NCBI RefSeq assembly: GCF_028641065.1
Contig: NC_073377.1
Span: 64,914,001-64,978,000, forward strand
Length of the DNA stretch: 64,000 nucleotides
DNA from: Leucoraja erinacea
Taxonomy: Eukaryota
Direction: 5' to 3'
Shown: piece by piece, positions 5,900 to 60,045 of the stretch
Numbering within the stretch: the first letter of the stretch is position 1
Layout of the letters: every line of letters starts with the position of its first letter
Translations under genes and position numbers: made by a program
Notes under the pieces: generated by a model
What the model was told of the DNA's origin: nothing
The model's database searches: none
The model's input: only the letters and a program-made list of their open reading frames with translations

Positions 5900-8800
5900 G
5901 ACTACCAAAGATTGGTAAATTGAAATTTCGTTTCTACGGTCAATAGGCTTTGCTCTGCGTGTGCACATGTAAGCAGCAGTTTGAAAACTTGGGTTCTGAG
6001 ACTGTAAACCATTACCCTGCCTGCTGTAGTAAAAGTCAGACACATAAGTCTTAGTTATCAGACTCAGCGAACCGCTTTTAATGTTCGCCCTCTGGAGACC
6101 ATCAAAAAGGGGGCAGCAGAATCCAGACTGACAGAGCCACGGTCCAAAACCGCTGTGCAAAAATCCTATTCGGCCCCTCGGAGACCGAGAGATGGGATTG
6201 GACAACGAACGCCTCTCTTGTGTAATGATGATGGGGTGTAATGAAAACCCTCCCGTGCTCACTTGAGCTGGCATCTTGCAAACGACGAGCAATGCCTCCC
6301 CCCGCTGGCGCTGGCCATCTCCCCATCGGAGAGAAGGTTTCGAGCACCGATTGCAATCTGTCCCGCTGCCCCAAATACTGCCATGAGTTAATAAAAGATT
6401 GAACTGCCTGCCCGGAATAGAACTACACAGCCACGCGATCGTCAATAACGAATATAAACGGGTTACAACAGTTTAAAACATTCGCCTCGCATTTATCAAA
6501 TACAGGGATTAAACTAGGGCGAATAGAAGGGATTTCCCTGGGACAGAAATTGCTTTATCAAAAGGTTGCCTTACAGGCGCTCCATTGTACTCGACTTTAC
6601 ATGGCTAGAAGCAACAGCAGCAGAAGCAGCTCCTTAAAGTGCCAGCTACCGACTGAGGTCGGATGCCCACTCTCCGTGCGCTCTCTTTTATCGCCATAGC
6701 GCGCGTTAACCGTTTCGGTGCCACCCGGACAGCTGGTCCAGTCCTCCCGCTGGGTTTTGGCACTTGGGTAAAGAGCTTGAAGATAGCTTCGGGCCAAATG
6801 GTTGCGCGACCCGCCGCCCGCTGGTTCTCAATCTGCTGTGTGAAAAATCAGGCGAAATGTTGGCGTTGGGGGGTGGGGGCTGTGAGAGAATGGTTGGAGA
6901 TTGTACTGAGAAAGAAAGGTGGGGGCGTAGGGGAACTGTGAGCCCCGTGCCTTTGAGAAAAGCCCAGAACTAAAAAAAAACGCAGGGAAACTTATAATAG
7001 ACTACAGATGTATTACTGGGGAGTGTGTATAAGTATGTGGATCAGGGAGGATGGGGGAGGGGATGGAGAAAAAGAGAAACAGCGAGAGAAGAGAGAGGAG
7101 AGATTATAAAAAGGAATGACGGAAATAAAAAAGGAAACGTGCAAAGGAAAGAAAGGGGAAAGATAAGAGGACAGTTGAGGTGGGAACGACTGGGAAAGAC
7201 GGCGCCTCAGAGAGCGGAAAGAGGAATTATTTACTGATGGGGTCCATCATACAGAAAAGAGCCTAATGCTTAACAGAAATAGCCCAAGCTGCAGGGAAGA
7301 TGTGTGAGCGCTAACAGGGAGAAGTGATGGGACTGGGGGTTGCGGGGAAACGGCAGAATGCTCCGAGACAAAGAGTCGCGCAACTAAAATAAACGCCCGT
7401 TCTGTTCCTACCTCGGTTACTTTAGCGCCCGCCGAAACTCCAGCACAGCTCACAACTCAGTGCAGCTCACTTCACGGACACTCCAACAGTCCTGGCACCG
7501 TTCTCCTTTCCTTCCTGTTTACGCAATTCATCCGCATGGCAAGCCTCCCGGACAATCCAAAAAATCTCTCCCTCCTCCACCCTCGATCCAGGGACAGTAT
7601 AGTATTGCCAGCAAAAAAAAAAAATCCTGTATCTTGTTCGAAATTCCTTAAACCCCTGACGCAGGCAACCGATGGCTTCCACATCCACCGCCAATGTGTT
7701 TGTCATTATAGGATCTGCGCACCAAAGCCATCATCGTTAGTGCTGTCCAAGTGCAATGCAACGAGCGGCGGGCTGGCGTGACACAACACCATCGGAGGCA
7801 GCAGTCCACTCACTCCCATCACACAACAGCAACACACCAAAAAACCCACTGCAGTCCTCAGACAAGTATTTCACATTCAACCTCCAGCCTCTCCAAGTCA
7901 AAGAAATTCGCACTCCCGCACAATTTTTTTTAAGCCAAAGATAACAATCTTCAGAAAATAGTCGTCCACACTAATATTAGTAGCTAAAAACTCTCGGAAT
8001 AAATTCGAAACAACTCTGAAACTGACCCTGTGTGTGTGTGGAGTGAGAAAACGAAACGGAGTTAGCAATTTGCGTTCCTCTGTCACAGCTTTCGAGCGTG
8101 AATTTCTTTACGAAATCGTCGAGCAACGATAATAAAACAAGCCAGCATCGGCTTAATTAATTTACTTCACGTTCCCCTTACCTTGCGTAAAGTGGTAAAT
8201 CCACAAACTCCTCTTAAAACGGGCGGCAGCATATAGGTTTAACGTTGGAGTTGTGCTCTGGCTGTTAATGGGCGCACAGAACAGCGTCTTGTAATTGATT
8301 CAATGTTGCAGTCCATCCTTCCAAAAAAACTAATCATTTGCTTTAAGTAAATAACTGTCAGGAAATGAAGCCCCTGTGGTCGCTTCAGAATAAGAGTCTC
8401 TGCTCTGCTCTCAGTCAGCGCCGGGAGTCTTGCTATAGCTTGAGATTCTAGAGGTTGCGCCTCCCCAACTCTTATCCACGCAGGGGCACAGTCACAACTA
8501 GGGCCGTCTTATTCAGAAAGTTGCCATATGTGCGTTTTGTAGAAAGTTTTGTACGGTGGAGAACCTTATTTTTGTTGTTCATCTTCCAGATCTTTGTGAA
8601 CAGATTTACACATCAAGCGATTTTACGAGAACAATGTATATTCGTAATACTATTTCGAAATAAATAATTTTAACTAGGTGCAAGAACTGGGTATTTTTAA
8701 GGGAAGGGAGGTGATTAAATGCTTTCTATTTCGTTTTTCTCTCTCTCAGCGTTTACGACCACCATAAATCTACAGGAAAAACAAGTTTTTGAAAAGCAGA

Positions 8801-10992: not shown

Positions 10993-11031
<39 letters not shown>

Positions 11032-12823: not shown

Positions 12824-13304
12824 CATCCTTTTCCTCCAGAGATGCTGCCTGGACCGCTGAGTACTTTGTGCCTGACTTCGCTACATGCCAACATCTGTAG
12901 TTCATTTCCACACATCTCTGGATAGGTGACGTTTTGGGTCGGGGCCCTTCTTCAGAATTCAGATGCTGCCCGACCCACTGAGTTCCTCCAGCACTCTGTC
13001 TTTTTTTTTAAATAAACAAGCATCTGCAGTTCCTCCATGCTGGCTGATATTAAATGGTGGGAGCTATTTGGACTTTAGTCTTGGTCTCGCCTGATCTTCA
13101 GGTGCATTATCCCAATCCTTTTCTCGTGGTCGGTTCTCAAGGGAGTTTGCCATCGTATCTATTTCGTCCGTTACTACGGCTTTTGTTTTACTATTTATTG
13201 CGGCACATTGTGCGATGTCTTTAAAGCAGGTAAGTCATATATTTGAACCAGCTCTACTTGCCGACTTTATTTCTCCGGAAACACATTTCATTGACTGAAA
13301 CCCC

Positions 13305-13860: not shown

Positions 13861-14692
13861 CAATTCAATTTCAATTCAATTGTATTTGTCATATGCAGGT
13901 TAGCACAGGGTCAACGGTACAATGAAATATGTTTGACAAGACAACGGATCACCTCAGCAACAAGTATAAAATAAGATAAACATGACATTGGTAGGTAAAA
14001 GGACAATAATAAAATAATCAACATATATGATGTGAAGTGTGTTTATGAGTTCAGAAGCCTGATGGCCTGATGCTAAAAACTGTTCTTAAGTCTGGTGGTA
14101 CATGCAGCCATGCTCCTGTATCGTAGCCTGACTGTAACATGGAGAACAGTCTGTGTGTTGGGTAGCTGTGGTCCTTGATGATGCTGTGTGCCTTCCGCAG
14201 GCATCGCCGGTGGAAAATGTCCTGAATGGCCGGGAGACAGTTGCTAGTGATGTGCTGTGCCGCCTTCACCACTCTCTGTAGTGATTTGCAGCTGTGGGCA
14301 GAACAGTTCCTGTACCAGACTGTGATGCAGCCCGTCAGCAGACTGTCGATGGTGCAACTGTAGAAGTTTGGGAGGATACTGGCGTTCATGTCAAACTTCC
14401 CCAGTCTTCTCAGGAAAAAGGTCCGCTGGTGGGCTTTCTTTGTTATTGTGTCCATGTGCAGTGTGCAAGAGAGGACCTCAGTGATGTGCACACCAAGGAA
14501 CCTGAAGCTGCTGACCCTTTCAACCTCACCATCACCAATGTGGATGGGGAGGTGTCCACTCCCCTGCTGTCTCCTGTAGTCCACGATCATCTCTTTAGTT
14601 TTGCTGACATTGAGAGAAAGGCTATTTTCCAAGCACCATCTATTTAGTGCCCTTACCTCCTCTCTGCAGGCCGTCTCCACCTCATGATTCAA
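13860..14692 (-). mobile_element. Rex1/Babar-clade LINE, 5'-truncated
   Basis: ORF LSLNVSKTKEMIVDYRR...FLGVHITE...KKAHQRTFFLRRL...GCITVWY; tail gacaaataca(attga)n on the minus strand near 13860-13890. Confidence 0.85.
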
Positions 14693-14798
14693 TTTGGGAA
14701 CCCATCCATCGTAAATGCAATTACTAATATGCTCAAGATAGACACAAATCGCTGGAGTAACTCAGCGGGATAGACAGCATCTCCGGAGAGAAGGAATG

Positions 14799-14832
14799 GG
14801 TGACGTTTCAGGTCGAGACCCTTCTTCAGACT
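14799..14832 (-). ncRNA. Minimal type I hammerhead ribozyme motif
   Basis: Minus strand AGT-CTGAAGA-A-GGGTC-TC-GACCT-GAAA-CGTC-ACC. Confidence 0.65.
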
Positions 14833-24240: not shown

Positions 24241-25566
24241 AGCATCTGGATAAACAGGGACTGATTAGGAACAGTCAACATGGATTTGTGCCTGGAAGGT
24301 CATGTTTGACTAATCTTCTTGAATTTTTTGAAGAGGTTACTCGGGAAATTGATGAGGATAAAGCAGTGGATGGTGTATATATGGACTTCAGTAAGGCCTT
24401 TGACAAGGTTCCTCACGGAAGGTTGGTTAAGAAGGTTCAATTGTTGGGTATTAATGGTGGAGTAGCAAGATGGATTCAACAGTGGCTGAATGGGAGATGC
24501 CAGAGAGTAATGGTGGATGGTTGTTTGTCAGGTTGGAGGTCAGTGACTAGTGGGGTGCCACAGGGATCTGTGTTGGGTCCACTGTTGTTTGTCATGTACA
24601 TCAATGATCTGGATGATGGTGTGGTAAATTGGATTAGTAAGTATGCAGATGATACTAAGATAGGTGAGGTTGTGGATAATGAAGTAGATTTTCAAAGTCC
24701 ACAGAGAGATTTATGCCAGTTGGAAGAGTGGGCTGAAATATGGCAGATGGAGTTTAATGCTGATAAGTGTGAGGTGCTACTTGGCAGGACAAATCAAAAT
24801 AGGACGTACATGGTAAATGGTAGGGAATTGAAGAATGCAGGTGAACAGAGGGATCTGGGAATAACTGTGCACAGTTCCCTGAAAATGGAATCTCATGTAG
24901 ATAGGGTGGTAAAGAAAGCTTTTGGTGTGCTGGCCTTTATAAATCAGAACATTGAGTATAGAAGTTGGGATGTAATGTTAAAATTGTACAAGGCATTGGT
25001 GAGGCCAATTCTGGAGTATGGTGTACAATTTTGGTCGCCTAATTATAGGAAGGATGTCAACAAAATAGAGAGAGTACAGAGGAGATTTACTAGAATGTTG
25101 CCTGGGTTTCAGCAACTAAGTTACAGAGAAAGGTTGAACAAGTTAGGGCTTTATTCTTTGGAGCGCAGAAAGTTAAGGGGGGACTTGATAGAGGTCTTTA
25201 AAATGATGAGAAGGATAGACAGAGTTGACGTTGATAAGCTTTTCCCACTGAGAGTAGGGAAGATTCAAACAAGGGGACATGACTTGAGAATTAAGGGACT
25301 GAAGTTTAGGGGTAACATGAGGGGGAACATCTTTACTCAGAGAGTGGTAGCTGTGTGGAATGAGCTTCCAGTGAAGGTGGTGGAGGCAGGTTCGTTTTTA
25401 TCATTTAAAAATAAATTGGATAGTTATATGGACGGGAAGGGAATGGAGGGTTATGGTCTGAGCGCAGGTATATGGGACTAGGGGAGAATACGTGTTCGGC
25501 ACGGACTAGAAAGGTCGAGATGGCCTGTTTCCGTGCTGTAATTGTTATATGGTTATATTATATGGT
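24241..25566 (+). mobile_element. Young CR1 LINE, 5'-truncated, with open RT ORF 24288-25481
   Basis: SCLTNLLEFFEEVT, YMDFSKAFDKVPH, VTSGVPQGSVLGP, YADDTK; tail (ttatatgg)n. Its 3' part is nearly identical to 60823-61362. Confidence 0.95.
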
Positions 25567-27707: not shown

Positions 27708-30700
27708 GATTTAAATCTTTTTATTTGAATTTCACAGCAATTTGCATACATACAATGACACCAGACAGTGACAGTCAAGGCATAATTGTGCAACAGTATG
27801 CAAGCGACCCTCAAAGCCCTTAACCTTACCCTTACCCACCTTCAACCCACCCGAATCAGGTCGGAACCAAACGGGGACAAACAACACTCACATACAAACA
27901 CATCCACACAAATATGGTAAGATAAACGAAACAAAAAGTAATAACAGTAAATAAGTAAGTAATTAAATAAATAAGTGTGGGGAGGGGGGGGTGGTTAAGG
28001 GGGGAGCAGCTGCAGTAGAGCAGGACAGTGATGGAAAGCACTCAGTCCTCTTCCGAGTCCGGGGACAAGTTAAGAGAGTTAACAAGTTCCAGGAAAGGGT
28101 TCCATGTATCTAGGAATGTCTTGGTAGAGCCTTTGAGAGAGAACCTAAGTTTTTCAAGCTTTAAATTGTAGAGCACCTCCTTGATCCAGCGGGCGTGTGT
28201 TGGGGGACAGGTGAGCCTCCAGTTAAGCAAGATCAGTCTCCGGGCTAACAAGGTTGTAAAAGCCAGGACCCACTTCAAAGCAACAGAGAGGTTGGTGTTG
28301 GGAGGAATACCAAAAATGGCTGACAGTGGGTTTGGAGGAATAGTCTGGCCATAGGCTCTGCTAATCAAGTCGAAAGCACTCCTCCAAAAGGTTGCTAGCT
28401 TAGGGCAAGACCAAAACATATGGCTATGGTTGGCAGGGGATTGATTACATCTGTTGCAGGTGTCCCTAACAGCGGGGTAAATTCTAGACAATCTTGCATT
28501 TGTGTAGTGGACTTTGTGAAGGACTTTGCATTGGATTAGGCCATGACGGGCACATATGGAGGAAGAATGGATCAAATCCAAGGCAGAGTCCCATTGCTGG
28601 TCTGTTAGTTTCGTATTCAGCTCACCCTCCCACGCAGCTTTTAATGAGGTATGAGGTTTCAATATAACCGACCCTAACAAGTTATACAAAACAGAGATGC
28701 ATTTCTTCCGGTTGGGATCTAGAGCTAAGATGGTATCGGTCAGGGTTTCAGGGGGGCGATTTGGGAAATGGGGGAATGTCTTCTTCACAAAATCCCTAAT
28801 CTGGAAAAAACGAAAAAGGTGGGAGTTTGGGAGGCTGTAGTTGGACGAGCTCCGCAAAGGACGAAAAGATGCCATCCTTGTATAGGTTTTTGATAAAACT
28901 GATGCCATGACTATGCCAGGTTTCGAATGTGGGGTCTGTACTTGAAGGTTTAAAGATGTGATTTTTAAGCAGTGGGGTCAAGATGGAAGGGCCTTGTAAA
29001 CCAAAGTTTTTCCTGAGTTGACTCCATATCTTGAGCGAAAGTGACGCAATTGGGCCTGCACCCACAGATGTTATAGGAAGGGGGAGTTGGGAGCATAGGA
29101 CAGACCGCAACAGGAGACGTGAACTCGCCTTTTCCATGTGTACCCAGGTCGGTAGGTGGTCGTAATCGTCATTCATCCAATACAGGAGTTTTTGCAAGTT
29201 AGCTGCCCAATAGTATCGCCTGAAGTCAGGAAGTGCCAAACCGCCGTCACTCTTAGGAGACTGTAGTATCGCCTTTCGGATTCTAGCCGGTTTGCTACCC
29301 CATAAAAATTTAGATATTGTCCTTTCTAATTTATCAAAAAAAGATTTAGTGATAAGTATAGGGACGTGCTGAAAAAGATACAGGAATTTGGGTAGGACGA
29401 CCATCTTGACCAGATTTATCCGGCCCACGAGGGACAGCGGTAAAACTGACCAGCGGTCAAAATCTCTTTCAGCTTTCTCAACCAGAGGCAGAAAGTTTGT
29501 GCGGAACATATCAGATATAGGTGTTGTAATAAAAACACCGAGGTAGCGAAACCCGTCCTCCGCCCATTTGAATGAGGTTAAAGAGCGAGGGAGCTGCTTA
29601 GCCAATGAGTTAGTCGGTAATAGCTCACTCTTTTGGTAGTTAAGTTTATAACCAGAATACGCACCAAACCGTTCTAAAATATTCGTAATCACAGGGAGAG
29701 AGCTGACTGGATTCGAGATGTACAGGAGCAGGTCATCCGCATACAATGAGACTTTATGAGATGTGTCGAACCGTGTAATACCTTTAAAGCCCTTCTCTGA
29801 GCGTAACCAGACCGCCAAGGGTTCCATCGCGACAGCAAACAGAAGTGGTGATAACGGGCAACCCTGCCTGGTACCTCTCTGAAGGGGGAAGTGGGACGAC
29901 AGTGTGCCGTTTGTTTGTACTGAGGCCACCGGGGACGAGTATAACAGACTGACCCAAAGAATGAAACTATTACCGAGGCCAAACCTGTCCATCGCCTCAT
30001 ATAGGTACCTCCATTCGACCCTGTCGAAAGCTTTATCGGCGTCGAGGGAGACCACTATTTCCGGGGGTCTCACTACTCGGTGAATGGATGATGTTAAGGA
30101 GACGTCTAGTATTGTGGGAGGACTGTCGGCCTGGCATGAACCCTGTTTGATCTAACGAGATAATAGAGGGCATCACTCATTGAAGACGGAGCGCAAGGGC
30201 TTTAAAGAGGATTTTGAGGTCCACATTCAGGAGTGAAATTGGTCTATAGCTACTACAAAGCAGGGGATCGTTCTCCTCTTTAAGAATTAGGGAGATAGTA
30301 GCCCACGACAAGGTGGGCAGTAGGCGACGATGTAAAAATGCCTCATTGTACATATCTCTCAGGACTGGTGCGAGGAGAGCAGAGAAAGCTTTGTAATATT
30401 CTACAGTGAAGCCGTCAGGGCCGGGTGACTTTCCGCTTTGCAGCGATGTGATGGCTGCTTGGACCTCAGCAACAGTTATGGGACCACCCAACTCTCTCGT
30501 GGCTTCATCATCAATTCGGGGAAACGTCATACTACGGAACATGTCATCTGCAGTGGGAGGACAATCGGAAGCGTATAGTTCAGCGTAGAATTTAGCAAAG
30601 GCTTCATTAATTCTAAGGATCAGTATGAATCTCCCCTAAGCTGGATCTAATGGCTGGAATTAGCCGTGAAGTTGCCTCGGTTCTGGCCTGATGGGCCAAA

Positions 30701-32744: not shown

Positions 32745-34700
32745 AGAAGATTGTTCATCCCAGTTTGGCAAAAGAATAAATCAGGGAAGGTAGTACATCC
32801 ATGGATAACAAGGGAAATCAGGGATAGTATCAAAGCGAAGGATGATGCGTACAAATTAGCCAGAAAAAGCAGCATACCAGAGGACTGGGAGAAATTCAGA
32901 GACCAGCAGAGGAGGACAAAGGGCTTAATTAGGAAAGGAAAAATAGATTATGAAAGAAAACTGGCAGGGAACATAAAAACTGACTGCAAAAGAAAGATGT
33001 GAAAAGAAAGAGATTAGTTAAAACAAATGTAGGTCCCTTGCAGTCAGAAACAGGTGAGTTGATCATGGGGAACAAGGATATGGCGGACCAATTGAATAAC
33101 TAAATTGAATGGATTAAAGGCCGATAAATCCCCAGGGCCAGATAGGCTGCATCCCAGAGTTCTTAAGGAAGTAGCTCCAGAAATAGTGGATGCATTAGTA
33201 ATAATCTTTCAAAACTCTTTAGATTCTGGAGTAGTTCCTGAGGATTGGTGGCTAACAAACGTAACCCCACTTTTTAAGAAGGGAGGGAGAGAGAAAACGG
33301 GGAATTACAGACCAGTTAGTCTAACATCGGTAGTGGGGAAACTGCTAGAGTCAGTTATTAAAGATGGGATAGCAGCACATTTGGAAAGTGGTGAAATCAT
33401 TGGACAAAGTCAGCATGGATTTACAAAAGGTAAATCATGTCTGACGAATCTTATAGAATTTTTCGAGGATGTAACTAGTAGCGTGGATAGGGGAGAACCA
33501 GTGGATGTGGTGTATCTGGACTTCCAGAAGGCTTTCGACAAGGTCCCACATAACTTAAAGCACACGGCATTGGGGGTTCAGTATTGATGTGGATAGAGAA
33601 CTGGCTGGCAAACAGGAAGCAAAGAGTAGGAGTAAACGGGTCCTTTTCACAATGGCAGGCAGTGACTAGTGGGGTACCGCAAGGCTCAGTGCTGGGACTC
33701 CAGCTATTTACAATATATATTAATGATCTGGATGAGGGAATTGAAGGCAATATCTCCAAGTTATCTCCAAGTAAGCTGGGGGGCAGTGTTAGCTGTGAGG
33801 AGGATGCTAGGAGACTGCAAGGTGACTTGGATAGGCTGGGTGAGTGGGCAAATGTTTGGCAGATGCAGTATAATGTGGATAAATGTGAGGTTATCCATTT
33901 TGGTGGCAAAAACAGGAAAGCAGACTATTATCTAAATGGTGGCCGACTAGGAAAAGGGGAGATGCAGCGAGACCTGGGTGTCATGGTACACCAGTCATTG
34001 AAAGTAGGCATGCAGGTGCAGCAGGCAGTGAAGAAAGCGAATGGTATGTTAGCTTTCATAGCAAAAGGATTTGAGTATAGGAGCAGGGAGGTTCTACTGC
34101 GGTTGTACATGGTCTTGGTGAGACCACAGCTGGAGTATTGCGTACAGTTTTGGTCTCCAAATCTGAGGAAGGACATTATTGCCATAGAGGGAGTGCAGAG
34201 AAGGTTCACCAGACTGATTCCTGGGATGTCAGGACTGTCTTACGAAGAAAGACTGGATAGACTTGGTTTATACTCTCTAGAATTTAGGAGATTGAGAGGG
34301 GATCTTATAGAAACTTACAAAATTCTTAAGGGGTTGGACAGGCTAGATGCAGGAAGATTGTTCCCGATGTTGGGGAAGTCCAGGACAAGGGGTCACAGCT
34401 TAAGGATAAGGGGGAAATCGTTTAAAACCGAGATGAGGAGAACTTTTTTCACACAGAGAGTGGTGAATCTTTGGAACTCTCTGCCACAGAGGGTAGTTGA
34501 GGCCAGTTCATTGGCTATATTTAAGAGGGTTAGATGTGGCCCTTGTGGCTAAGGGGATCAGAGGGTATGGAGAGAAGGCAGGTATGGGATACTGAGTTGG
34601 ATGATCAGCCATGATCATATTGAATGGCGGTGCAGGCTCGAAGGGCCGAATGGCCTACTCCTGCACCTAATTTCTATGTTTCTATGTTTCTATGTTTCTA
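32745..34700 (+). mobile_element. CR1 LINE ORF2 with deletions and frameshifts, intact 3' end
   Basis: KSPGPD.LHPRVLKE, NYRPVSLTSVVGK, YLDFQKAFDKVPH, VPQGSVLG; tail (tttctatg)n. Confidence 0.95.
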
Positions 34701-44280: not shown

Positions 44281-46678
44281 TCTGTCATATCAATCAACAT
44301 TTCCTCATGCCCACCACAACGTTTCGCAATATTTGTGAAATCACCGAAACAATATCTTCATTCAAGGATTATATATTCTAAAAAGTCAAGATCCCAACAC
44401 TGATACCTGTAATAAAAAAAGAATGCAGGTGCTGGTTTATGCCAAAGACAGATACAAAATGTTGGAGTAATGAGGCGGGTCGGGCAGTATCTCTGGAGAA
44501 AATGAACACGGGGGGATCCTTCTTCAGACACAGATCCCTGTGGTACAGCACTTGCTATTTCTTGCGAACCAGAAAAAGACCCATTTATGCCAACTCTATT
44601 TCCTATTAGTTAGCCACTCTTCTATCCCCGTCATTATGTTATGTCCTACACTATTTTATTTTCTGCAATAACCTTTGATACTGCACTTTCTGAAATCTAA
44701 GCACATTACATTCATCAGTTTTTCTTTGTTCACAGCATGTGTTAATTTAGCGCCAAAAAAGATGGGTTAAATATAATCTCCCTTTCAAAAGACCATGTTG
44801 AATTTTCCTAATTACCTTAACTTCCTCTTACTGCAATACCTTTAATAATAGTTGCCAATGATAGTTGTTGTTTTTGAACAAAGGGGTGTTTTCTAATCTA
44901 ATGCAAGCTTCTTTGAAGCGAGGGTGTTTTAGAAAATTACAACCAATGTATCACCTTCTCACTAATCACTGCTTGTAACATCCTAGGAAGAAGCCCATCA
45001 GGAATGAAGACTTTTGAGCAAAACCCAAAGTGCTGGAGAAACTCAGGCTGCCTCTGGGGAGAGAATGCACGGGCTATGTTTTGGATCGGGACCTGTCTTG
45101 TTAACCTGAAAGTTCTAAAGATCTTACCCATTACAAATGCACATTTGAAATTCAGACACAATAACTTAGAACCATTTCAATAATGTCTAGCACAAGGCTG
45201 AATGTTTGATTGGACAATGTGATAGGTAGGACTGATCACCAAAGGATAAAAGTGACCTTGATGTAGTTTCCGACCACTGAATTCAAAAATGCCCAACTCA
45301 TGTGATTATATTCTCTTCAACTTCTTTCTGAATCCTTTCAGGGGTTAGTTACCGCTGCCTCCTTCCTACATTTAAGGACCCCACCAATAATGTAATCTGA
45401 GTTATCATGAGCAATGCCGTACAAATGATTCTAGCACGTCAGAAAAATACTTCACATAAAGCATTGCGTTGATGTATTTCACTGATCAAATTATTTTTTT
45501 CACTCAAGGGTAACAGATAACTGCCACAGAAGTTCCAACATTTGTTCCGTTTACTAGATCCATTGTAATTTTATAAAACGTTGTGAATACACATTTACAT
45601 TATTAATCCAACAGTTACATTGTTGGAAAATGATGTGCTGCCAAAATATATCCGTATTGACATGGGCAGATGCTGTTACTGCATACATTCTAAGTATTTG
45701 CTCATATAACAGTAGGAAATGGCCCAGTTCAATAATCTGTGAAGTTCTCAAACGTATCAGTGAAATTGTACTTTGAAACCTTTGTCCCCTTTAACATGGT
45801 GATCAGATCAACTGATTCCAAGGAGTTTTAGTGTGTTTTGCTGTGTTGCTATGTGGAATGGAATAGTTAACATTATCTGTAGTTAGATCGTGTTGGCTTT
45901 TTCTGTTTACACAAGATCCAAGGGCAAAGGTCAGATTTACTTTGTAATGCGCTAGTCCAGTCAGTTTTGAGATACACTAATCCGCATAACAAGCAGAAAA
46001 AATGATTTCTTGGCAGCACTCAGATGTTGAACGTGCGTCTGCTACGTTTGTGCGGCGGAGACGGTTCCTCTATCGACTAACCCCCCCCCCCCCCCGAGTC
46101 CCGCCCGTGCTGTCGCCCAACCACCCATAAAATAAATCTGCACGGATATTTTATGAATGCCTCAACCCCCGCTTCCTGTCTCAGAAATATACAAGTACAT
46201 AAGCGAAATTCGTCCAATTGTATTTGAAAGAGTGACAGTGGTAAATATCTGGGAATTATAAATAGTCCACAAGGATTCTACTGGTTTACCATATGGATCG
46301 CACGTCCAAATACAACGGGATATCAAGATTCAAGATTCAAGAGATTCAAGAGAGTTTATTGTCATGTGTCCCTGATAGGACAATGAAATTCTTGCTTTGC
46401 ATCATAGTAGGCATGACTACAGAAGAGATCAGAGTGTCCATATACCATAGTATAAATATATACATACATCGAGTCAAGGTTTGGTCATTTTGAAAATGGG
46501 AAGACATATTTGGTCGTGGGTTATGAATGAGGTTATTAACACATAATTGGAGTGAAGATTATTCATGGATGAGGATTAGGATTATTTTATGCTGCTATTT
46601 CTTTGCTCCCGCGCCAGTTCCAATGCCTACGCCAGTCTCGGTGAACGTGTGCAGTGATCCCGATAGTCACAGATTCAT

Positions 46679-48231
46679 TGTGTTCAAGAAGGAACTGCAG
46701 ATGCTGGAAGATCGAAGGTACACAAAATTGCTGGAGAAACTCAGCGGGCGCAGCAGCATCTATGGAGCGAAGGAAATAGGCAATGTTTCGGGCCGAAACC
46801 CTTCTTCAGACTGATGGGGGGTGGGGGGGGAGAAGGAAGAAAAAAGGGAGGAGGAGGAGCACGAGGGCGGGGGGATGAGAGGAGACAGCTCGAGGGTTAA
46901 GGAAGGGGAGGAGACAGCAAGGGCTAGCAAAATTGGGAGGATTCAATGTTCATGCCATCAGGACGCAAGCTGCCCAGGCGGAATATGAGGTGCTGTTCCT
47001 CCAATTTCCGGTGTTGCTCACTCTGGCAATGGAGGAGACCCAGGACAGAGAGGTCGGATTGAGAATGGGAGGGAGAGTTGAAGTGCTGAGCCACCGGGAG
47101 TTCAGGTAGGTTATTGCGGACTGAGCGGAGGTGTTCGGCGAAACGATCGCCCAACCTCCGCTTAGTCTCCCCGATGTAAATCAGCTGACATCTAGAGCAG
47201 CGGATGCAGTAGATGAGGTTGGAGGAGATACAGGTGAACCTTTGTCGCACCTGCAACGACTGCTTGGGACCTTGAATGGAGTCGAGGGGGGAAGTGAAGG
47301 GACAGTTGTTGCATTTCTTGCAGTTGCAACGGAAAGTGCCCGGGGAGGGGGTGGTACGGGAATGGAAGGGAAGAATTGACAAGGGAGTTGCGGAGGGAGC
47401 GGTCTTTGCGGAAGGCAGACATAGGGGGAGATGGGAAGATGTGGCGAGTGGTGGGGTCACGTTGGAGGTGGCGGAAATGGCAGAGTGTGTTGTATTTGCC
47501 AGCTGGTGGGGTGAAAGGTGAGGACTAGGGAGACTCTGCCCTTGTTGCGAGTGCGGGGATGGGGAGAGATAGCAGTGTTGCGGGGTATGGATGAGACCCT
47601 GGTGCGAGCCTCATCTATGGTGGCGGAGGGGAATCCCCGTTCCCTGAAGAACGAGGACATTTCCGATGCCCTGGTATGGAATGTCTCATCCTGGGAACAG
47701 ATGTGGCGTAGGCGGAGGAATTGGGAGTAGGGGATGGAGTCTTTACAGGGGGCAGGGTGGGAAGACGTGTAATCCAGATAGCCATGTGAGTCAGTTGGTT
47801 TGTAGTGTATGTCGGTCAGAAGTCTGTCCCCTGCGATGGAGATGGTGAGGTCAAGGAATGGTAGGGAAGTGTCGGAAATGGTCCAGGTGTATTGGAGTGC
47901 CGGATGGAAGTTGGTGGTGAAGTGGATGAAGTCAGTCAGTTGTGTGTAGGTGCAGGAGGTGGCCCCAAAGCAGTCGTCAATGTAACAGAGGTAGAGGTCG
48001 GGGATGGGGCCCTGGTACGTATTGAACAAGGATTGTTCGACGTACCCGACAAAGAGGCAGGCGTAGCTGGGGCCCATGCGTGTGCCCATAGCTACGCCTT
48101 GTGTTTGGAGGAAATGGGAGGAGTCAAATGTAAAGTTGTTGAGGGTGAGGACCAACTCCGCTAGCCGGAGGAGAGTGTCAGTGGCTGGGTATAGGTTGCT
48201 CCTCTGGTCGAGGAAGAACCGGAGGGCTTTG
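46679..48231 (-). mobile_element. Penelope-like retroelement, 5'-truncated, with 14-bp TSD
   Basis: RT QTQGVAMGTRMGPSYACLFVG...YIDDCF...LPFLDL; GIY-YIG YCIRCSRCQLIYIGETKRRLGDRFAEH. TSD agtcacagattcat at 46665-46678 and 48232-48245. Hammerhead motif at 46781-46812. Confidence 0.93.
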
Positions 48232-49693
48232 AGTCACAGATTCATCCCGGGTTAATGAGAGGCCCGTTACCAGATAGCCGGCCTCTCCAGAAAGCCATCG
48301 CCTGCTCCTTTTACTAAGTGGATTGAGAACAGGGCAACTTGAAATGTGTTCCGCCCAGATTTCCCAGTTGCATGGGACTGCACTACGAGACTTTTTCAGA
48401 CCTGCTGTTAGCGATGCGATGGTTTTAGGTTCCAGTTTACCGAGGTACGCGTGAAAATCTGTGTTTCGCGCATCAGTTCCACAGACAAATTCCACTGCCC
48501 GCAATGGGGTTGAAGTGAATCAGGCAGAGCCCTCGCTTACGCAAGATCCATTCAGAAGCCTGATAACAGAGGGGAATAAGTTTCTGAGGCTGGTGGTGCC
48601 CACCTTCAAGCTTCTGCCCAACGGTAGCAAAGAGAAGGAGGGATGAAGGGAGGTGTAGAGTTGGGGTAGGGCTGAGCAGGGATGATTGAGAGATATGTAC
48701 AACTGAGAGATATACACAAGCCTGCGCCAAGGGAGCAAAGCTGTCGACAGATTCACGTTAATATTTGTTCAATCAAATCTTTTAGTTTTAACCGCGGAAA
48801 GAAGTGGAGAATGTTTAGGTTAAACATTGCACTGTGGTTTCCGGGCACACGCCCATGCGAAGTAAAACATGCGATTGCTGTTTCTTTGCAGGCAAGACCA
48901 ACAGTCGGTGATTACAACCTCTGCTCAGGAGGCGGTCTTTGATTGTCTCAACACGATATTGAAATCCATTAATTAAATGATATCCTATAGTTAAACTATT
49001 AAATTAGATTAACTAAAATTTTAACTGTTAGCTGTGTGTCTCAGGAGAGGTATTCAGGATGTCGGGGTTCTTTCTTGTCCAATTGTATTCAGGAGCATTA
49101 CAGTATTTATTTATATATCTAATTGCATCGCTGTTTATCCTCCGCTGCTGTTCGTCGCGATTTCTGGTGCTTAAAACAACTCAAAATACAACGTGGAGAT
49201 ATTTCATGGTGTATCAAGTTTCGTGGAATTATTGAAATTAAGCTAAAAACGACGAACTAGATAAATAAAAATATTGATTTGGACAAATGGTAATTTGAAG
49301 CTCCCACAAAGTCCCTCTAATACTGAAACGCGCTTTTAAGTTATAGCGCCCTGCTTTAAGAATCTAATCTCTTTGCATGCATTTGTTGCGAATATCGTAT
49401 TTACACTGCATGGAATAACCCAGCACAATTCTCACCGAGTTTCCTCATTGATTCCCCTGTGGTCCTGATCAAAATCAGCTTGTCTTTTCCTTTCTGCACT
49501 TCTGCATCTATTCAAATGTGACGTTTAATATTTTCAAGAAAGTTGCAATTTTGTTTTGATCTCACGCTACCTGCAACAACTGGTGTCTTGCAACATAATG
49601 CACCCGCATCAAATTCTCAAACTCTCTATTGTTATAGTCATCTAACAACAAATGACGTCGAAGAAGGATCCCGACACGAAACGCCAATTGTCG

Positions 49694-49908
49694 GCTGTCC
49701 AATATTAGGAAACCTGAACGGAAACCTCTTTGCGCACCACCCAAGGTTTCCCTGCGGTTCCTGGCGGTTGCATGTGGTTGCCGGAGGTTGCAGGTAGTGG
49801 AAGCAGGTAAGGAGACTGACAAAGACCTCCAGGAACCGCACGGAAACCTTGGGTGGGGCGCAAAGTCTCCAGATGTTTCCGTTCAGGTTTCAAAAGTGGG
49901 ACAAGGGG
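49694..49908. mobile_element. Fold-back MITE related to the 39148 element
   Basis: gaaacctgaacggaaac pairs with gtttccgttcaggtttc; ctttgcgcaccacccaaggtttccctgcggttcctgg pairs with ccaggaaccgcacggaaaccttgggtggggcgcaaag; right end aagtgggacaagg. Confidence 0.7.
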
Positions 49909-51202
49909 ATGCCGCCTGACATATTGGTTCTCTCCTGCTTTCCTGCTTGTTGATCTATGGTTTCGTTTATTCAAGATTCCAGCTCCTGAAGTCCATTGTG
50001 TTCCTGACCAGTATGCAGATTATTGGAAAATGTCCACATTAACAATTGTTGTTAATACGGTTTACTCTCTGACAAATATTGCATGGTATTGTTGACATAT
50101 TTATTAACCAATATGTAAAACTAGTAAGATATAATGTTGTATCAATTATGCAATGAGATTCAATTATCTATCTGAATCTATCTGAGGAAGGGTCTCGACC
50201 CGAAACGCCACCAGTTCCTTCGCTCCATAGATGCTGCCTCACCCGCTGAGTTTCTCCAGCATTTTTGTCTACTTTCGAGTTTTCCAGCATCTGCAGTTCT
50301 TTCTTAAACAATTATCTTTCTGTTTCTTTCACATGCAATTACTAATTCGCGTAAAGTGTATTTCACGTGTACTGATCTCTGAACATGGCATCCATTTATT
50401 TCTTTAAAAGATTGAGAGGTATTTTCCCCTTGAGTATTCACCACGCAATCGTTCATCTGAATCTAATCCCAGTTCCACCTTGGTTTACTTTTATAAGCAT
50501 AGGATCCTGACAATATCCCGATTTTCCCCCATTTTACTTTCCTTTTCCGTTCTCGTTCAACTGAGTTAATAATTCTATTGATTATATGTTAATGAGCAAG
50601 TTGTGCTCTCGTCCCTGAAGTTGCTTGATAATAAACGCGGCGTGAATAATGTTTTCCAGGTAATAGTAGTAGTATACGGTAATGGTAAATTCGAAGGAAT
50701 GTGTCTGTAAGTAAAATTGTGCCGACTTCTTCACTGCTGATCACCACCAATTAGTGTTGAATAATTCTCAAACTGTTTTATAATAAACACGTGCCTACTG
50801 CTCCTTTTCTGAATCTGACCATGTCGGAGAATCAAATTTAGGAAAATATTTCTTTAACATTTTTCTGCCAATTAATCATGAGTTCATTTGAACCGCACTT
50901 TGCCCTCGACAGAATTGTTAATGTTGGTTTATTCTGCTTGTTATTGTATTTCAGTTCAAGTTGAACAAAGAAATGTTAACCCATCCAAAACATATCCTGG
51001 ACATATCCTGGCTCCATGCATCCATTAATATGGATTCTTGTCTCTGTGTTAGAAAACTATCCTTTTTCTCCAGACATGCTGCCTGGCCCGCTGAGTTACT
51101 CCAGCGCTTTGACTATTTTTAGAAAACTGCTCGTCTGACCGGAGTAATCGCCACTGTCAGATATTAAAATACATAGGGCATGATCTTCATTTGAATGTTG
51201 CA

Positions 51203-51208
51203 TTTATT
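51203..51208 (-). terminator. Candidate polyadenylation signal (AATAAA) of the Pdx gene
   Basis: Plus-strand tttatt about 120 nt downstream of the stop codon. Other AATAAA hexamers lie further downstream. Confidence 0.4.
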
Positions 51209-51328
51209 CCTTGCAATATATTAAATATTTAAAATGGAAATAAGTGTGGCCATATTGAATAACTGATAAAATGTTACAACATTTACCATCAAGAATATCA
51301 ATAATCAATATATTTTTAGAAGGATGTG

Positions 51329-51723
51329 TTAAAAATGTAATTCCTGTGCTAATAGTAGATGTCCAACTTCGCTATTCATCGAAGTAACTGAAAAATCATT
51401 ATTTGTCTTATTGAATGAGTTTTCGGAGTAACTCCCTTCAAACTCCTCTCCCGCATAGTTTTCGCATAGCGTGCGTTTTGCTTTGCTTGTAATGGTCTTG
51501 ACTTGCCCTTTCGCTTCTTCCTTCTTCCATTTCATCCTCCTGTTTTGGAACCAGATTTTGATGTGCCTCTCGGTGAGATTCAACAACGCGGCGAGTTCCA
51601 CCCGCCGGGGCCTGGAGATGTACTTGGCGAAGTGGAACTCTTTTTCCAGTTCCAACAGCTGACCCCTGCTGTAGGCCGTTCGAGTTCTTTTGCTTTCATC
51701 CCCGTCCATCGGGTGGCTGTTTC
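51329..51723 (-). CDS. pdx2: Pdx homeobox gene, coding exon 2 (homeodomain and C-terminus)
   Basis: Acceptor ctttcttgcag|GA joins exon 1 in frame ([10 protein letters not shown]). Homeodomain [60 protein letters not shown] (51694-51515) carries the Pdx-diagnostic His44. Stop TAA at 51331-51329. Spliced CDS is 714 nt (237 aa); intron is 3835 nt. Confidence 0.93.
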
Positions 51724-54700
51724 CTGCAAGAAAGCCAGATATTCACTGAAAACAAATAACTTAATGAAGCTGAAAAAAGCCTCACGAGCCGAAAAGTCAC
51801 ATATCCATTCATGTTCTCTGGAGATTCCACCTGACCGACTGACTTACTCCAACACTGTGTGTATGTTTATGGTAAACCAGCGTCTGCAGTTCCTGGTGTC
51901 CAGTTTAATGATACCTGCAGATTGAGCGAAATAAGAACACATTTCTGGAGGAACCGAGCGGGTCAGGCAGTATCTGCAGAAGGAAACGGACAATTTTCGG
52001 GTCGGGACTCTTCATCGGTGTTCTTCGCTCAAAACCCCAGCATCTGCGGTTTCTCGTGGCCCGGCAGTCTGCGGTTTCTCGTGGCCCGGCAGTCTGAGGT
52101 TTTCGTCCCGAGTCGGGATGTGTTGGCCGTTCACAAAGTTCAATTTTCAACTCGAGCACTTGAAAAATGAGTAGGAAGGAACTGCAGATGCTGGTTTACA
52201 CCGATGACAGACTTACAAAGCTGGAGTAACTCTGCGGGTCACAAATAAGTGACGTTTTATAAGAAACGCCACGTATTCCTTTTCTCCAGAGATGCTGTGT
52301 GGCCCTTTGAAAAATGACTATCAAAAATCGACATCATTTTCTGGAACATTGTCGAGAGGCGATTGATAGTCAAGAACTAATTTTTCAAAGGGCCCAAAAC
52401 ATTCTGAAATTCTCTGACGCGTTAATTGACTTTGAACTTCTAAATGTAATTGTAACTCGTCTTATTCTCGCAAATCATAATGATACGTTAACCAATATCT
52501 TTTAGTCGGAGGGGAGGGAATCACCTTAATTGCAGATTCTGGTCCAGTTTCGTCGGAAATGAAATACACCTATCTACGTCCTCCGCTGATGTTGCCTGGC
52601 CCGGTGAATTACTCCAGGACTTGGTGTTTTTTACAATGATGGGATCTGAAACATTACCAGAACCATGGGTGATCTATCATGAATCTCAGATATATAAAGT
52701 AGCGCAGGGTGCCCAAGATACATTAAGCGCGCTGATGGACAAGTACTTATTTCCTGTGCGATATGTTGGTAGTTACGGGAAAATAACATAAAATTGCTGA
52801 AAATTCCTTCCAATTGCGGTCATTGTTTTGGTCTTCAATGCCCTTTTTCTTGAACAACAATTTTTGAAATTCACTGGAGTCCTTGAGAATCAATTAGTCA
52901 TCCAAACAAGGCATGTCTTCGTTGCTCCTTTAGTAACAGGTGCCATATCGATACAATTGCCCTGAGAACTTCATGGAATCTCAAGGTTCCAGGGGATTCA
53001 GAAATTGTTCTGCGCAAATTAAATCCTCAGAAAACTCAGTTTTCCCGAAAATTGTAGTAGGCATGGAACCCCAAAAGCCACTATAAAATTGTATGATTAA
53101 ATACAACTTTAGAAAAAAAAAGCTACCATGGGTGCTTGAATTGGGTGTCCCAAATCCTTCATCATAAACACCGAAGAAAATTGAAACAATAGGATATAAA
53201 ATGGAACATAGCTTGACTACTCTTTGTTAACAATTAAGTTAGATCGTCATTGGTAACATATCGGCATCTCCCTGCCCTGTTACCGTATTCCTTCATTTCT
53301 AGGTTTCATAAGTATATGTTCAATTTAATATTAATGTTGGATTGAAAGCCAGTGCTCTTTTGTAACTCGATACATGATACAGTAAATCGTGAAATTAAAA
53401 TATTTTAACAGAACCTAAAATAATCTTATTTTTAGCGCGTCATTAACCCATCTTCTATTCTCTTGTATTTAAATATCAAACCACGTTTTTTGGCACCGAT
53501 AAACTGGTTACTGCTTTATGCGGTGCCTGGTCGGGTAATAAAAACGAATAAGGTGATTTCCTTTCGTTGATCTTCACCAAGGTAGGTGGATTGGGGCAGG
53601 TACATATTGCATTCTCTAAATGTATACGTTGCCATTTCAGACCGAAGATTGGAGATGTGCGTGGATTTGTTCCCATTGAGTGGCGTTTGCATTTATCTGT
53701 GGGAAGTTTTGTCCTTGGAGGTGTCCATTAAGAAATGTTGGAGTTTATTTCTAGCACAGATTAATATAATTTCATTTCTACGATTTGATTTTTTTTTGTG
53801 GATTTGAAATCTCCTTACATTAAGACAATAGGTATTTACTCCAATATATATATAACACACACACACACATGTATGCATATATATATTAATGAGCAACAAT
53901 TAATTAGCATATATATATATGCTAATTAATTGGTGCTAATTAATAGAGCACAGGTATAAAGCTTTAAGTATAGACATTTTTTTTAAATACTGTAATAATA
54001 TTTATTTGCACCTGGCAAATGCAGACGGTCAAAATCAAATGCAAGTTCAGCTAAATTTAACCGGAGTGCCTTTTAAGTGAGACTGGTTACTAATTTGTAC
54101 TCTCCGTCGGCATGGATGTTGTGGGCCGAAAAGCCTGTTGTTGTAAGGTGTAATTATTGTCACTATTATATTGCTTGTTTTAATCATAATGACCCATTTT
54201 CTATTGATGATCAACTGCATTAACTTCCCGTTTGCAGCCCGTCTGCTTTACATTCTACGCTTGATTTAAACTGATTTAAATTTTGGTCTAAACATCAATC
54301 ATTTCTTAATATGTAATTAAAAATCACTATATTATCACCTGCTGAGAAGAAAATTCCTAATAAATGGTAGCATTGTAAAGTAACTATATTTTCCATCACC
54401 TTTTAAATCCCAGAATTTCTGCACAACATTTCTCGAAAGAAATGCGCAGAGAAGGGAAATTGATTTTATTCTTGCGATAATAACATTTATGCAATTACCA
54501 TGTCGCGGAAATTTGTGTCAACAAATTCACGGTGAGCATAAGTGCCAAGATAAGTCTCCAAATAATTAAATGTATAGGAGAGTGGGATTTCGGGCCCACC
54601 CAGTTGCCTTCCCACAGACGATTCGCAACGTTGTGCATTTTCGCCACTCTAATCAAGGAAGGGGTGAGCGTCTACGGTAAAACGCTCCAGGAAGATAGAG

Positions 54701-54974
54701 CTGTGACATTCCTCCTGGATGATTCAGCCCCGATTGACCATTTCCCACGTTTCTTGTTGCTTCGTTCCACCTGCATAGCAACCGTCAAATTCAACAAGTA
54801 ATCTTCGACATATGCCGGGCGAATATGCTTGGCTGCAGCACGGGCGTTGTCGAGCTTTTAAATATATTTTATATCCAGGGTTAACAATGGCCTTTATAAT
54901 TCGAGGGGGGGGGGAGGGAATACTTGATTTGCCACTGTCATGACTTTGAATTGATTTTTTGGCTGCACCTATTA

Positions 54975-55280
54975 GGGGCGGCACAGAGGCGCGCCTGCTA
55001 GTTGTGCTTCACAGCTCCAGAGACCCAGGTTTCAATCCTGACCTCAGCTGTTGGCTGTGTGGAGTTTGCACCTTCTCATTGTGACCGTGTGGGTTTCCTC
55101 TGGGTGCTCCAGTTTCCTCTCGCATCCCAAAAGGCAATCGGCCTCCGTTAATTGCCCCAGGTATACAGGGAGTGGATGCGAAGCTGGGATAACATGCATG
55201 TATGTGAACTGGTGATCAATGGTCGGCTTTGACTTGGTGGGACGAAGGGCCTATTTCCATGCTGTGTCTCTAAATTAAGC
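54975..55280 (+). mobile_element. V-SINE (HE1-like) in the Pdx intron
   Basis: ggggcggcacag... head, V-domain gtgtggagtttgca...gggtttcctctgggtgctccagtttcc, and tail gaagggcctatttccatgctgt. Confidence 0.8.
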
Positions 55281-55558
55281 TATCGTCGGGTGATGAATAT
55301 ATTGGAGTGTGCATTCTTGATTACATTTATGTTTTCTATATATACCCCAGGGATGCGTGGCCACACGCAGAAATATATCTCACGCAATGGACGTACTTCT
55401 TTAAACGCGCGATGTAGTGATAACATTTCTCAGTAAAATTATCATATACATTATCTACGAAAATGTGTGGGTGATTATTATGGTTAAGAACTTTTGACAT
55501 TTCGTTCATCCCTCCTACTAAACACAAAACGGACTATTTGATGATCCTGTAACCGTAC

Positions 55559-55877
55559 CTGCCCACTGATCGCTCCAAGCATAGGCATGCGATTTAGTAT
55601 TTTTCATCCAAGGGAACGGGTAGCGCCCCTGAGGTTCACGGTTCTCCGCGTACTCGGCGTTGAGAAAATTCACCTGGGGAAGGTGGCAAGAGTTCAGATC
55701 TGCCGGACTGCCGTAGGGGGTGAAATCCGTCAAATTCTGCTGGTTGAAATCGCCCAAGCACGACCCGAGGAGAGGGGGCTGCGGATTCCCATCGTAGATG
55801 CAGGCAGGTGGATCTTGCGTGTATTCCAGTCCCTGGTATTGGCAGGCACTTTCGAAATAGTCCACGTCGCAATCCAT
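55559..55877 (-). CDS. pdx2: Pdx (Xlox) ParaHox homeobox gene, coding exon 1 (transactivation region and hexapeptide)
   Basis: Translates MDCDVDYFESACQY...DPPACIY...DFTPY...YPFPWMKNTKSHAYAWSDQWAG, matching Pdx motifs (PPACLY, DISPY, PFPWMKSTKAHAW..QWAG). Phase-1 donor GCAG|gtacgg after 55559. An alternative in-frame ATG lies at 55898. Pdx family call is strong; Pdx2 versus Pdx1 rests on synteny and divergence. Confidence 0.9.
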
Positions 55878-56640
55878 AACTGAGACGCGTTCTAACATCT
55901 ACGTAGATCGTATGCTCACACCTGGTCACAAACTCTCTACCTGGTTCTTTGTCATGTGATTATTTGTCAGTCTATTATTGGCGGGTCGAGAACAAATGAG
56001 CGTTTGCTTTTCTTAGAAAAACGCAATGCATCTTATGTGAACCATAGCAATAGGGAACAATATACCGTGATAATAATCTGGCTGAGTTTCTGCACATCCG
56101 CTTGTTTCTACTGCAACTATCTAACTCTTGGAAAATGGTTGTAAAGAGCAAAGAGTAGAATCAGAATTTGTATGCAATGAGTTCGAAACATCAATTGCAC
56201 TGTTCCAATGAACTTTGGACATATTACATCTGCAAAATAATCAGGTAAGAGGGGATATAACGTACTGCGGTATATTGTATGTCGATATGGAAATGCGTGG
56301 GTGGGCATGTACATATCACACGTGTTTGACATATACGTTGAAATCAATGCCTTAAAAAAGAGGAAATCAAGCAACAGAGAAAATAGAGGCTGGGGTAGTA
56401 GGCATTGCGAGCCCGCACGTCGTTCTATGCCTTCATGGTATAGTCTCTATCTCTATAACATATTCATGTTCTTCCCCCCACTCTAATACAGCCCCAAATC
56501 CCTGGATGCGATTTGTGTCGAGAAATCTGCCCCTCCCATCAACTATTCAGAGATTGTTCTCCACTGTTTTTCCTGGTAATATTACAAATTCATCACTGAG
56601 AGAAGAAATATCTACCAATATTTAATATTCACCAATATCT

Positions 56641-56950
56641 CGGCACGGTGGCGCAGCGGTAGAGTTGCTGCCTTACAGCGCTTGCAACGCCGGAGACCCG
56701 GGTTCGATCCCACCTGCTTGTACGGAGTTTGTACGTTCTCCCCGTGACCTGCGTGGGTTTTCTCAGAGATCTTCGGTTTCCTCGCACACTCCAAAGCCGC
56801 ACAGGTAATTGGCTTGGTAAATGTAAACATTTTCCCGTGTGTGTAGGATACTGTTAATACGCGGGTGTCGCTTGTCGGCGCGGGACCCGGTGGGCCGAAG
56901 GGCCTGTTTCCGCGCTGTAACTCTAAAATTAAAAAAACCTAAAACTAAAT
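56641..56950 (+). mobile_element. V-SINE (HE1-like), well preserved, upstream of Pdx
   Basis: cggcacggtggcgcagcggtagag (A box), gggttcgatcc (B box), V-domain, and tail gggccgaagggcctgtttccgcgctgta. Confidence 0.9.
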
Positions 56951-58519
56951 CTCGCCTAATATTTTATCGTCTGTACAGAGATGGCGACCCTCGGAGTAGA
57001 CGCCCTCCTCTGCATACTCCCCACGTCCAAATGGATGCATAATAACAGGTCATAAGACTCCAAACCACATAATCCTGTTTTTTTTCATACAGACTAGAGT
57101 TTGTTCATTTATCATTCCATGCATGTGCATATTTAGTTGTAATTATTCGGTTATTTTCTTATTCTTTCCACAATTAGGAAGATGATACGCTCTTGTCTTC
57201 CATCACAGTGCATTGTGGTAGATGTTTATGTTAATTTTAGTGTAGTTGTGTGTCTTGTTGCTTTTTTGGAATGACTGTGCAGCAAATCAAATTCCTTGTA
57301 TGTTTTTTACACACTTGGCTAATAAATTAGTTACAATTACAATTAGTTACAATTACAATTACAATTAGCCTTTTATTGAGAGTGGTTAGATTTGCCTTCT
57401 CCAGCCGGTAGTCATTCCGCAAACCCTTCATCAATTTAACTTTTTAAAATGATTATAAAAGGCAAATGATTCAAACGTATAAAATAAAACTATCCTTTGT
57501 ATTAACATTTATCCTTGGTATGTATTGATTTCCAAATCCATTGCTTCCAAGCCATTTAGTAGGTTTAAGTGCTGACGGCAGGTTTGTATGTCCTCAGCAC
57601 GGTAGCACAGAACAGGGACATTTACAATGGATTAGAAACAGTTTACAATAGCAGCCTTGTGCCAATTGTTGATTTACACAAGCACTCGACTGATTAATAG
57701 GATTTTATTTCTACCAGTGACCTCTGTTCAACAGAACAGATAGATTTGTTCCCTCCACACCCTGTACCCCACCCCACCAGCACACTGAGATTATGAAATA
57801 ACATTGCTAATCAAGCTGTTACTTCTGGTGCCATTCACTGTCAGTTTAAGAACACGCCTCTCATTGAACTAAAGTTTGGTCTAAGGTATTCTGCCGTCGT
57901 GGTGAAGGTATTGATTTTCTCCAGTTTATTCTGTATCCTGTGTACACAGTAGAAATAAATGACCTATTGACCCGCTATCAGGTAACAAACTATAGGTTGA
58001 CTTGGATACCAAAGCATGGTGGTATTGAACAAAGATTATCCAGCAGGAAAATAGCTGCTGTTTTCATGTTGTCTCTCCCCTATTTATTTAGAAATGCTAC
58101 CTGAACCTGTTTCCGATATTTAATTTTTAAAAAAGAATGTAAATAATGTTTAACAGTGCATTTGTTGGAACTCCACACGTATATATTACAATAGTGCATC
58201 ATTTGGAAAAAAAAATGAATATCCGTGGAAATTACAGATTCTGCCACGTTTGGTTACTACCGAAATTCTTGGCTTACACTATCAGTGCCGAGTGTCACCT
58301 CTTTGACTCGTTCACAATTCAAAACCCACCCACCCACCCTTTCAATCTCTACCTTTCTCTCTCTCTACCTCTCTCTCTCTCTCTCTTTCACTCACAGACA
58401 CACAGGAATGTAATCTCTGCCCTGGATTGTAGCTTTGGAAAGGAGAGTCAGAGACGTCGCACAATGGGTGGTGGAGTGGGGGCGGGAGGGTGTTAAGAGG
58501 TTTCATTTATTATAAATAT

Positions 58520-59893: not shown

Positions 59894-60045
59894 GCACCAT
59901 GCACTGCACCATGCACTGCACCATGCACTGCACCATGCACTGCACCATGCACTGCACCATGCACTGCACCATGCACTGCACCATGCACTGCACCATGCAC
60001 TGCACCATGCACTGCACCATGCACTGCACCATGCACTGCACATGC
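59894..60045. repeat. 12-bp minisatellite (GCACCATGCACT) x12
   Basis: Twelve perfect units from 59894 to 60037 plus a partial unit. Confidence 0.95.

Follow-up and report, generated by a model that had tools for sequence, protein, structure and literature searches.

We analyzed 64,000 nucleotides (nt) of the genome of the little skate Leucoraja erinacea (contig NC_073377.1, positions 64,914,001 to 64,978,000; in the following called the window, with positions counted from its first nucleotide). The question raised by this locus is whether the Pdx homeobox gene within it is Pdx1 or the second paralog, Pdx2. We found that it is the intact and already published little skate Pdx2. The initial annotation of the locus, made from the DNA sequence alone, had reached this reading, which is correct but not new.

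The gene consists of two coding exons and a single intron on the minus strand (Table 1). The span initially given for it, 51329-55898, is bounded exactly by its stop and start codons, and the structure described with it, a complete two-exon Pdx gene with hexapeptide, phase-1 intron and a His44 homeodomain, can be read in the sequence in full. Exon 1, which contains the motif PPACIY, ends with ...TGG GCA G followed by GTACGG. Exon 2 is preceded by ...CTTGCAG and reads (G)NSHPMDGDE, the 60-residue homeodomain, a 61-residue tail and TAA. Because exon 1 ends one base into a codon and the intron has GT..AG ends, the intron is in phase 1. It starts 15 codons past FPWMK and thereby splits the hexapeptide from the homeodomain, a feature of the Xlox/Pdx family. 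The spliced model comprises 244 codons, with a frame open throughout and canonical splice sites. No Pfam match was obtained for exon 1 in the Pfam search. FPWMK is kept in every Pdx2 and Pdx1 sequence compared; its role in contacting PBX is described in PMC4362833. An AATAAA at 51213-51218 on the minus strand, ~110 bases beyond the stop codon, is a possible polyadenylation signal.

Table 1 Features of the Pdx2 locus and of the remaining window.
Feature	Position	Strand	Details
Pdx2 coding exon 1	55559..55898	-	ATG 55898-55896; 113 codons and first base of Gly114; donor GT 55558-55557
Hexapeptide core FPWMK, residues 95-99	55602..55616	-	PBX-contact motif of Hox/ParaHox proteins
Single intron, 3835 nt	51724..55558	-	Phase 1, GT..AG; contains copies of a repeat resembling short interspersed nuclear elements (SINE-like)
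Pdx2 coding exon 2	51329..51723	-	Last two bases of Gly114, 130 codons, TAA 51331-51329
Homeobox, 60 codons	51515..51694	-	SKRTRT...KWKKEE, His44; Pfam PF00046, E 1.2e-22
Catshark Pdx2 reverse transcription PCR (RT-PCR) primer ScPdx2r1	51550..51572	+	Exact 23/23 match; primer from PMC2944030
Non-coding stretch, neighbor of Pdx2	8266..8400	-	Co-oriented, ~43 kb downstream of the Pdx2 stop
RVT_1 reverse-transcriptase fragments	14051-14692, 24288-25481, 28796-30073, 33584-34552		Pfam; between Pdx2 and 8266-8400
zf-RVT open frame	within retroelement region 28042-30073		Pfam
GIY-YIG open frame	46924-47460		Pfam

For the database comparisons, the exons were searched and compared singly and never joined, and the identical protein XP_055492287.1 (P0159, Leucoraja erinacea, 244 amino acids) stood in for the spliced product. 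Its residues 1-113 are identical to exon 1 (113/113) and its residues 114-244 to exon 2 (131/131). This protein shares a 90% cluster with ADG65542.1, “pancreatic and duodenal homeobox 2 [Leucoraja erinacea]”, the protein from skate bacterial artificial chromosome (BAC) 24D8 reported by Mulley & Holland in 2010 (PMC2944030). In 244 residues, the two differ only at residue 2, where ADG65542.1 has Phe and the genome Leu (codon 2, 55893-55895), a difference explained either by allelic variation or by an error in the older sequencing. The catshark primer ScPdx2r1 yielded a single match without mismatches in the window, with 0 expected by chance. The exon identity to XP_055492287.1, the near-identity to ADG65542.1 and the primer match therefore identify the gene as the published Pdx2.

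Searching with the exon-2 peptide against 1.84 billion representatives, we obtained one full-length match in a single stretch, P0008 (239 amino acids, E 3.4e-46), a “Pdx1-like” protein of Scyliorhinus torazame. With P0008 as query, the matches listed included another 13 proteins named “Pdx1-like” (E 6e-136 to 7e-61), beyond which scores fell to ordinary Pdx1. Latimeria contributed one of them, and sharks, rays and a chimaera the other 12, XP_055492287.1 being one of these. Intact relatives of Pdx2 were present among these matches in 12 other chondrichthyan species, and the top full-length matches were all Pdx proteins.

These names conceal the nature of the gene. The RefSeq name of XP_055492287.1 is “pancreas/duodenum homeobox protein 1-like”, and Pdx2 appears as a name only in the GenBank entry from 2010. 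Likewise, 13 of the 14 listed cluster representatives of the Pdx2 clade (see below) bear the NCBI name “Pdx1-like”, and the fourteenth has its name from UniRef alone. The initial description of Pdx2 as known but easily mis-annotated as Pdx1 applies to the skate gene itself, which is known but poorly named, its RefSeq label hiding a Pdx2. This name is the sole correction that our analysis makes to public data. As the 2010 study had already cloned, named and mapped the gene, the practical value lies in a clean annotation of exons, intron phase, hexapeptide and homeobox.

To place the gene, we calculated three phylogenetic trees of 45, 59 and 46 rows, hand-picked for taxon spread from three match listings of 120 rows each; most teleost, bird and mammal Pdx1, all models with multiple homeodomains and all unnamed “lgn” proteins are absent from them. 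In the 45-row tree (276 columns, IQ-TREE with LG+C20), the vertebrate Pdx proteins separated into two starred clades, Pdx2 (100/98, 18 rows) and Pdx1 (100/99, 19 rows). Members of the Pdx2 clade were P0159, the skate protein already named Pdx2, every chondrichthyan “like” protein, Latimeria and a single sturgeon protein. The same split was found in the 59-row tree (Pdx2 clade 95/99, 30 rows) and in the 46-row tree (100/99, 21 rows), and the Pdx1 clade was starred at 100/99 in all three. A grouping of the protein with Pdx1, named beforehand as the observation that would speak against an intact Pdx2, appeared neither in the three trees nor in one approximately unbiased (AU) test described below.

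Compared with the Pdx2 proteins of sharks, rays, chimaera and coelacanth (among them Scyliorhinus torazame P0008, Callorhinchus P0162 and Latimeria P0163), the skate protein lies in the same starred clade and shares the N-terminal MD..DYFE..PPAC, the hexapeptide and a homeodomain with H21 and A36. Chondrichthyan Pdx2 proteins have in common a short C-terminal tail ending in NDFSVT..G.LL. The identity to Scyliorhinus torazame Pdx2 is 58% in exon 1 and 67% in exon 2.

The homeodomain had been described as differing from that of Pdx1 by S1, S9, G11, H21, A23, A36 and L37. We found this list to be exact for six of the nine Pdx1 homeodomains compared (Rhinoraja, Callorhinchus, Latimeria, Loxodonta, Xenopus and Atractosteus). 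Pdx1 of Hemitrygon and of Ara already has S1, leaving six differing sites each, and Xyrauchen Pdx1 has seven differing sites, but with other residues at 36 and 37. All seven differences lie within positions 1-37 (helices 1-2 and loop), outside of helix 3, and Arg3, Arg5, Ile47, Gln50, Asn51 and Met54 are the same as in Pdx1. Among solved structures, the Pdx1 homeodomain 2h1k is nearest (E 1.9e-30, 53/60 identical), followed by Scr (4.4e-24). A His at homeodomain position 44 is diagnostic of the Xlox/Pdx family; it is present in the window gene and in all 16 Pdx/Xlox homeodomains tabulated. Judged by its homeodomain similarity, His44 and the hexapeptide plus intron, the gene is a member of the Xlox/Pdx family (ANTP class, ParaHox). 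G11, H21 and A36 are common to Pdx2 and amphioxus Xlox and do not occur in Pdx1; therefore the Pdx1 states at positions 11, 21 and 36 look derived. Position 23 is A or S in skates and N in other Pdx2 proteins.

The RefSeq name and a homeodomain that shares 53 of 60 residues with Pdx1 could both be taken to mean that the gene is skate Pdx1 itself, or its allele or an assembly duplicate. However, a distinct skate Pdx1 exists (XP_055492872.1, 279 amino acids), located on another contig (88 Mb versus 170 Mb). Pdx1 and Pdx2 in general are alike in their two-exon layout, in which the first exon encodes the hexapeptide and the second the homeobox, and in their base-contacting residues; they lie on different chromosomes and, reportedly, in different paralogons. 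Skate Pdx1 differs from the window gene in the N-terminus (36% identity across exon 1, with gaps) and in the C-terminal region, whose tail is unalignable (exon 2 can be aligned only across 72 residues around the homeodomain). Together with the separate starred clade that holds the window gene in all three trees, the second skate gene refutes an identity as skate Pdx1, which we regard as virtually impossible. It is also extremely improbable that the gene originated from Pdx1 by a duplication confined to cartilaginous fish, rather than being an ancient Pdx2 shared with the coelacanth. Such an origin would fit the finding that most named examples come from cartilaginous fish, and trees of the short homeodomain only are weak, as PMC2944030 itself says. 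In the full-length trees, however, the chondrichthyan and coelacanth copies group together and apart from all Pdx1, and an AU test in which all 13 chondrichthyan Pdx rows were placed in one clade rejected this arrangement (-64.3 log-likelihood units, p-AU 2.2e-5). Pdx2 moreover retains G11, H21 and A36, as does amphioxus Xlox, and PMC2944030 has reported for both skate and coelacanth that the gene is syntenic with Gsx2 and Pdgfra.

We further considered whether the frame is intact but the gene silent or decaying in skate. We mapped reads of four RNA runs from four studies (X8, X12, X15 and X6; tissues not known, 1-25% of each run read) to 5,901 letters around the gene, and not a single read fell on either exon in any of the four, as expected for a silent gene. 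Against decay stand the 244 open codons with canonical splice sites, the 88% identity to Rhinoraja Pdx2 over 227 columns (homeodomain 58/60), the intact copies in the 12 other chondrichthyan species and a catshark ortholog that is transcribed; moreover, the tissues of the RNA runs are not known and transcription factors are lowly expressed. RNA reads were found only on repeat pieces (~51976-52369 and ~54931-55324), where 72-99% of them continue into unlike sequence, and they are therefore uninformative on splicing. The zero depth neither shows nor excludes expression of Pdx2, and we consider a silent or decaying gene very unlikely. Several points, the zero depth being one of them, weigh against a functional Pdx2: the 13 chondrichthyan rows for the AU test were chosen after inspection of the tree; the order Gsx2-Pdx2-Pdgfra rests on the BAC result in PMC2944030, not on the window; and TAAT binding, PBX contact and nuclear entry via helix 3 (see below) are predictions. 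Taking all this into account, we assign a probability of about 93% to the reading that the gene is the functional Pdx2 of Leucoraja erinacea, the ParaHox Xlox-family sister of Pdx1, originating from the early vertebrate genome duplications.

Two of the repeat pieces flank exon 2: that at 50991-51187 lies immediately beyond the stop codon, that at 51976-52369 within the intron. Both carry hundreds of reads from all four runs, most of which run into unlike sequence, and joints of the “opposite strands” type link one piece to the other. The pattern points to a transcribed and abundant repeat family with inverted copies at these positions, and not to expression of Pdx2.

Structure, intactness, identity and orthology were determined in this analysis; the DNA binding, PBX use, nuclear import and expression tissues of Pdx2 are predicted from conserved residues and from papers. 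The gene would encode a nuclear transcription factor of 244 amino acids. Its homeodomain most likely binds TAAT-core sites, like Pdx1, because every base-contacting residue of Pdx1 is kept. The FPWMK hexapeptide is the most likely contact for recruiting PBX partners, and the basic RRMKWKK in helix 3 is the most likely nuclear localization signal. Almost no similarity to Pdx1 exists outside the homeodomain and hexapeptide; therefore, the partners and targets of Pdx2 are probably unlike those of Pdx1. According to PMC4362833, the hexapeptide, DNA-binding domain and nuclear localization signal are conserved in Pdx2, but the transactivation and PCIF1 domains of Pdx1 are not. If the catshark is a guide, the skate gene would be active in pancreas, duodenum and spiral intestine. 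Transcripts of catshark Pdx2 occur in the first two of these organs and in the spiral valve (PMC2944030), and the catshark pancreas transcriptome contains them as well (PMC4362833). The authors of PMC2944030 name two species as best suited for studying what Pdx2 does beside Pdx1 in pancreas and gut, one of them being the little skate.

The initial annotation had also called Pdx2 lost in tetrapods and ray-finned fish. This statement repeats the literature: a 2025 paper on the axolotl describes Pdx2 as lost in tetrapods and absent from the axolotl (PMC11825805). It is called into question by further proteins in our trees. Using the sturgeon protein of the Pdx2 clade and a newt protein as queries, we obtained short “Pdx1-like” proteins from many ray-finned fishes and amphibians. 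Inside the Pdx2 clade, arranged as in the species tree, were 17 ray-finned fish and five amphibian proteins of 178-223 amino acids, labeled “Pdx1-like” or “Pdx1” (P0026, P0260-P0282, P0053, P0062, P0077, P0279 and P0327). The fishes comprise bichir, sturgeon, gar, bowfin, eels, bonytongue, herrings, loach, catfishes, knifefish, pike and a salmonid; the amphibians are two newts, two spadefoot-type frogs and one caecilian. In the 59-row tree, the 17 ray-finned rows form one group within the Pdx2 clade (90/52), in an order that matches fish phylogeny. In the 46-row tree, the five amphibian rows, Latimeria and nine ray-finned rows constitute the bony-vertebrate side (90/90) of the Pdx2 clade.

A duplication of Pdx1 restricted to ray-finned fishes was rejected by an AU test (p 3.4e-8). 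To test the alternative that these proteins are sister to all Pdx1, they were placed in a single clade with all Pdx1, which was not rejected for the ray-finned “like” rows (p 0.069) or for the amphibian ones (p 0.32 with two rows, 0.076 with five), and several of the ray-finned and amphibian branches are long. On balance, we lean toward the view that Pdx2 is not confined to cartilaginous fish and coelacanths. In the literature searched, which did not extend to subscription papers and supplements, we found no report of Pdx2 in ray-finned fishes or amphibians, and one may be in print. If the assignment is true, the skate gene belongs to a far larger family, and the function of Pdx2 becomes approachable in newts and in fishes kept on farms or in laboratories. 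Should synteny confirm it, published accounts of where the gene was lost would have to be corrected.

Looking at the surroundings of the gene, we found no second homeobox: a homeodomain hidden Markov model detected Pdx2 alone among the 1314 open frames of at least 30 amino acids in the window. A merged Gsx2-Pdx2 model was sought among matches with two homeodomains, and all ten inspected were fused Hox-type models. The initial annotation had predicted Gsx2 beyond the right edge of the window, on the minus strand, and had placed Pdx2 upstream of a PDGFRA-like promoter. The linkage of skate Pdx2 to Gsx2 and Pdgfra was described on a BAC of the same species (PMC2944030). Within the window, the candidate neighbor is the non-coding stretch at 8266-8400. 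A possible donor site, CAAG/GTAAGG, follows it near 8183. This stretch is a putative PDGFRA promoter or 5′ untranslated exon. No recognizable PDGFRA exon was seen, by eye, among the minus-strand open frames of at least 35 amino acids in 1-8250, and a 19-mer of the stretch had no match in a search of paper texts.

The region between the Pdx2 stop and this stretch contains three runs of N and retroelement remains; those with the GIY-YIG frame are possibly a Penelope-like element. Pfam searches with the ten longest of the 25 open reading frames of at least 130 amino acids returned retroelement domains only. The observed/expected ratio of CpG is 0.6-0.86 at 4001-17000 and at 46001-58000, and 0.2-0.5 in the repeat-rich middle. 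One of the two raised blocks covers Pdx2 and the other the stretch at 8266-8400, which would suit two unmethylated developmental-gene domains. Finally, a near-perfect tandem array lies 4 kb upstream of the Pdx2 start, at 59894-60045, with 12.8 copies of a 12-base unit and 99% matches.

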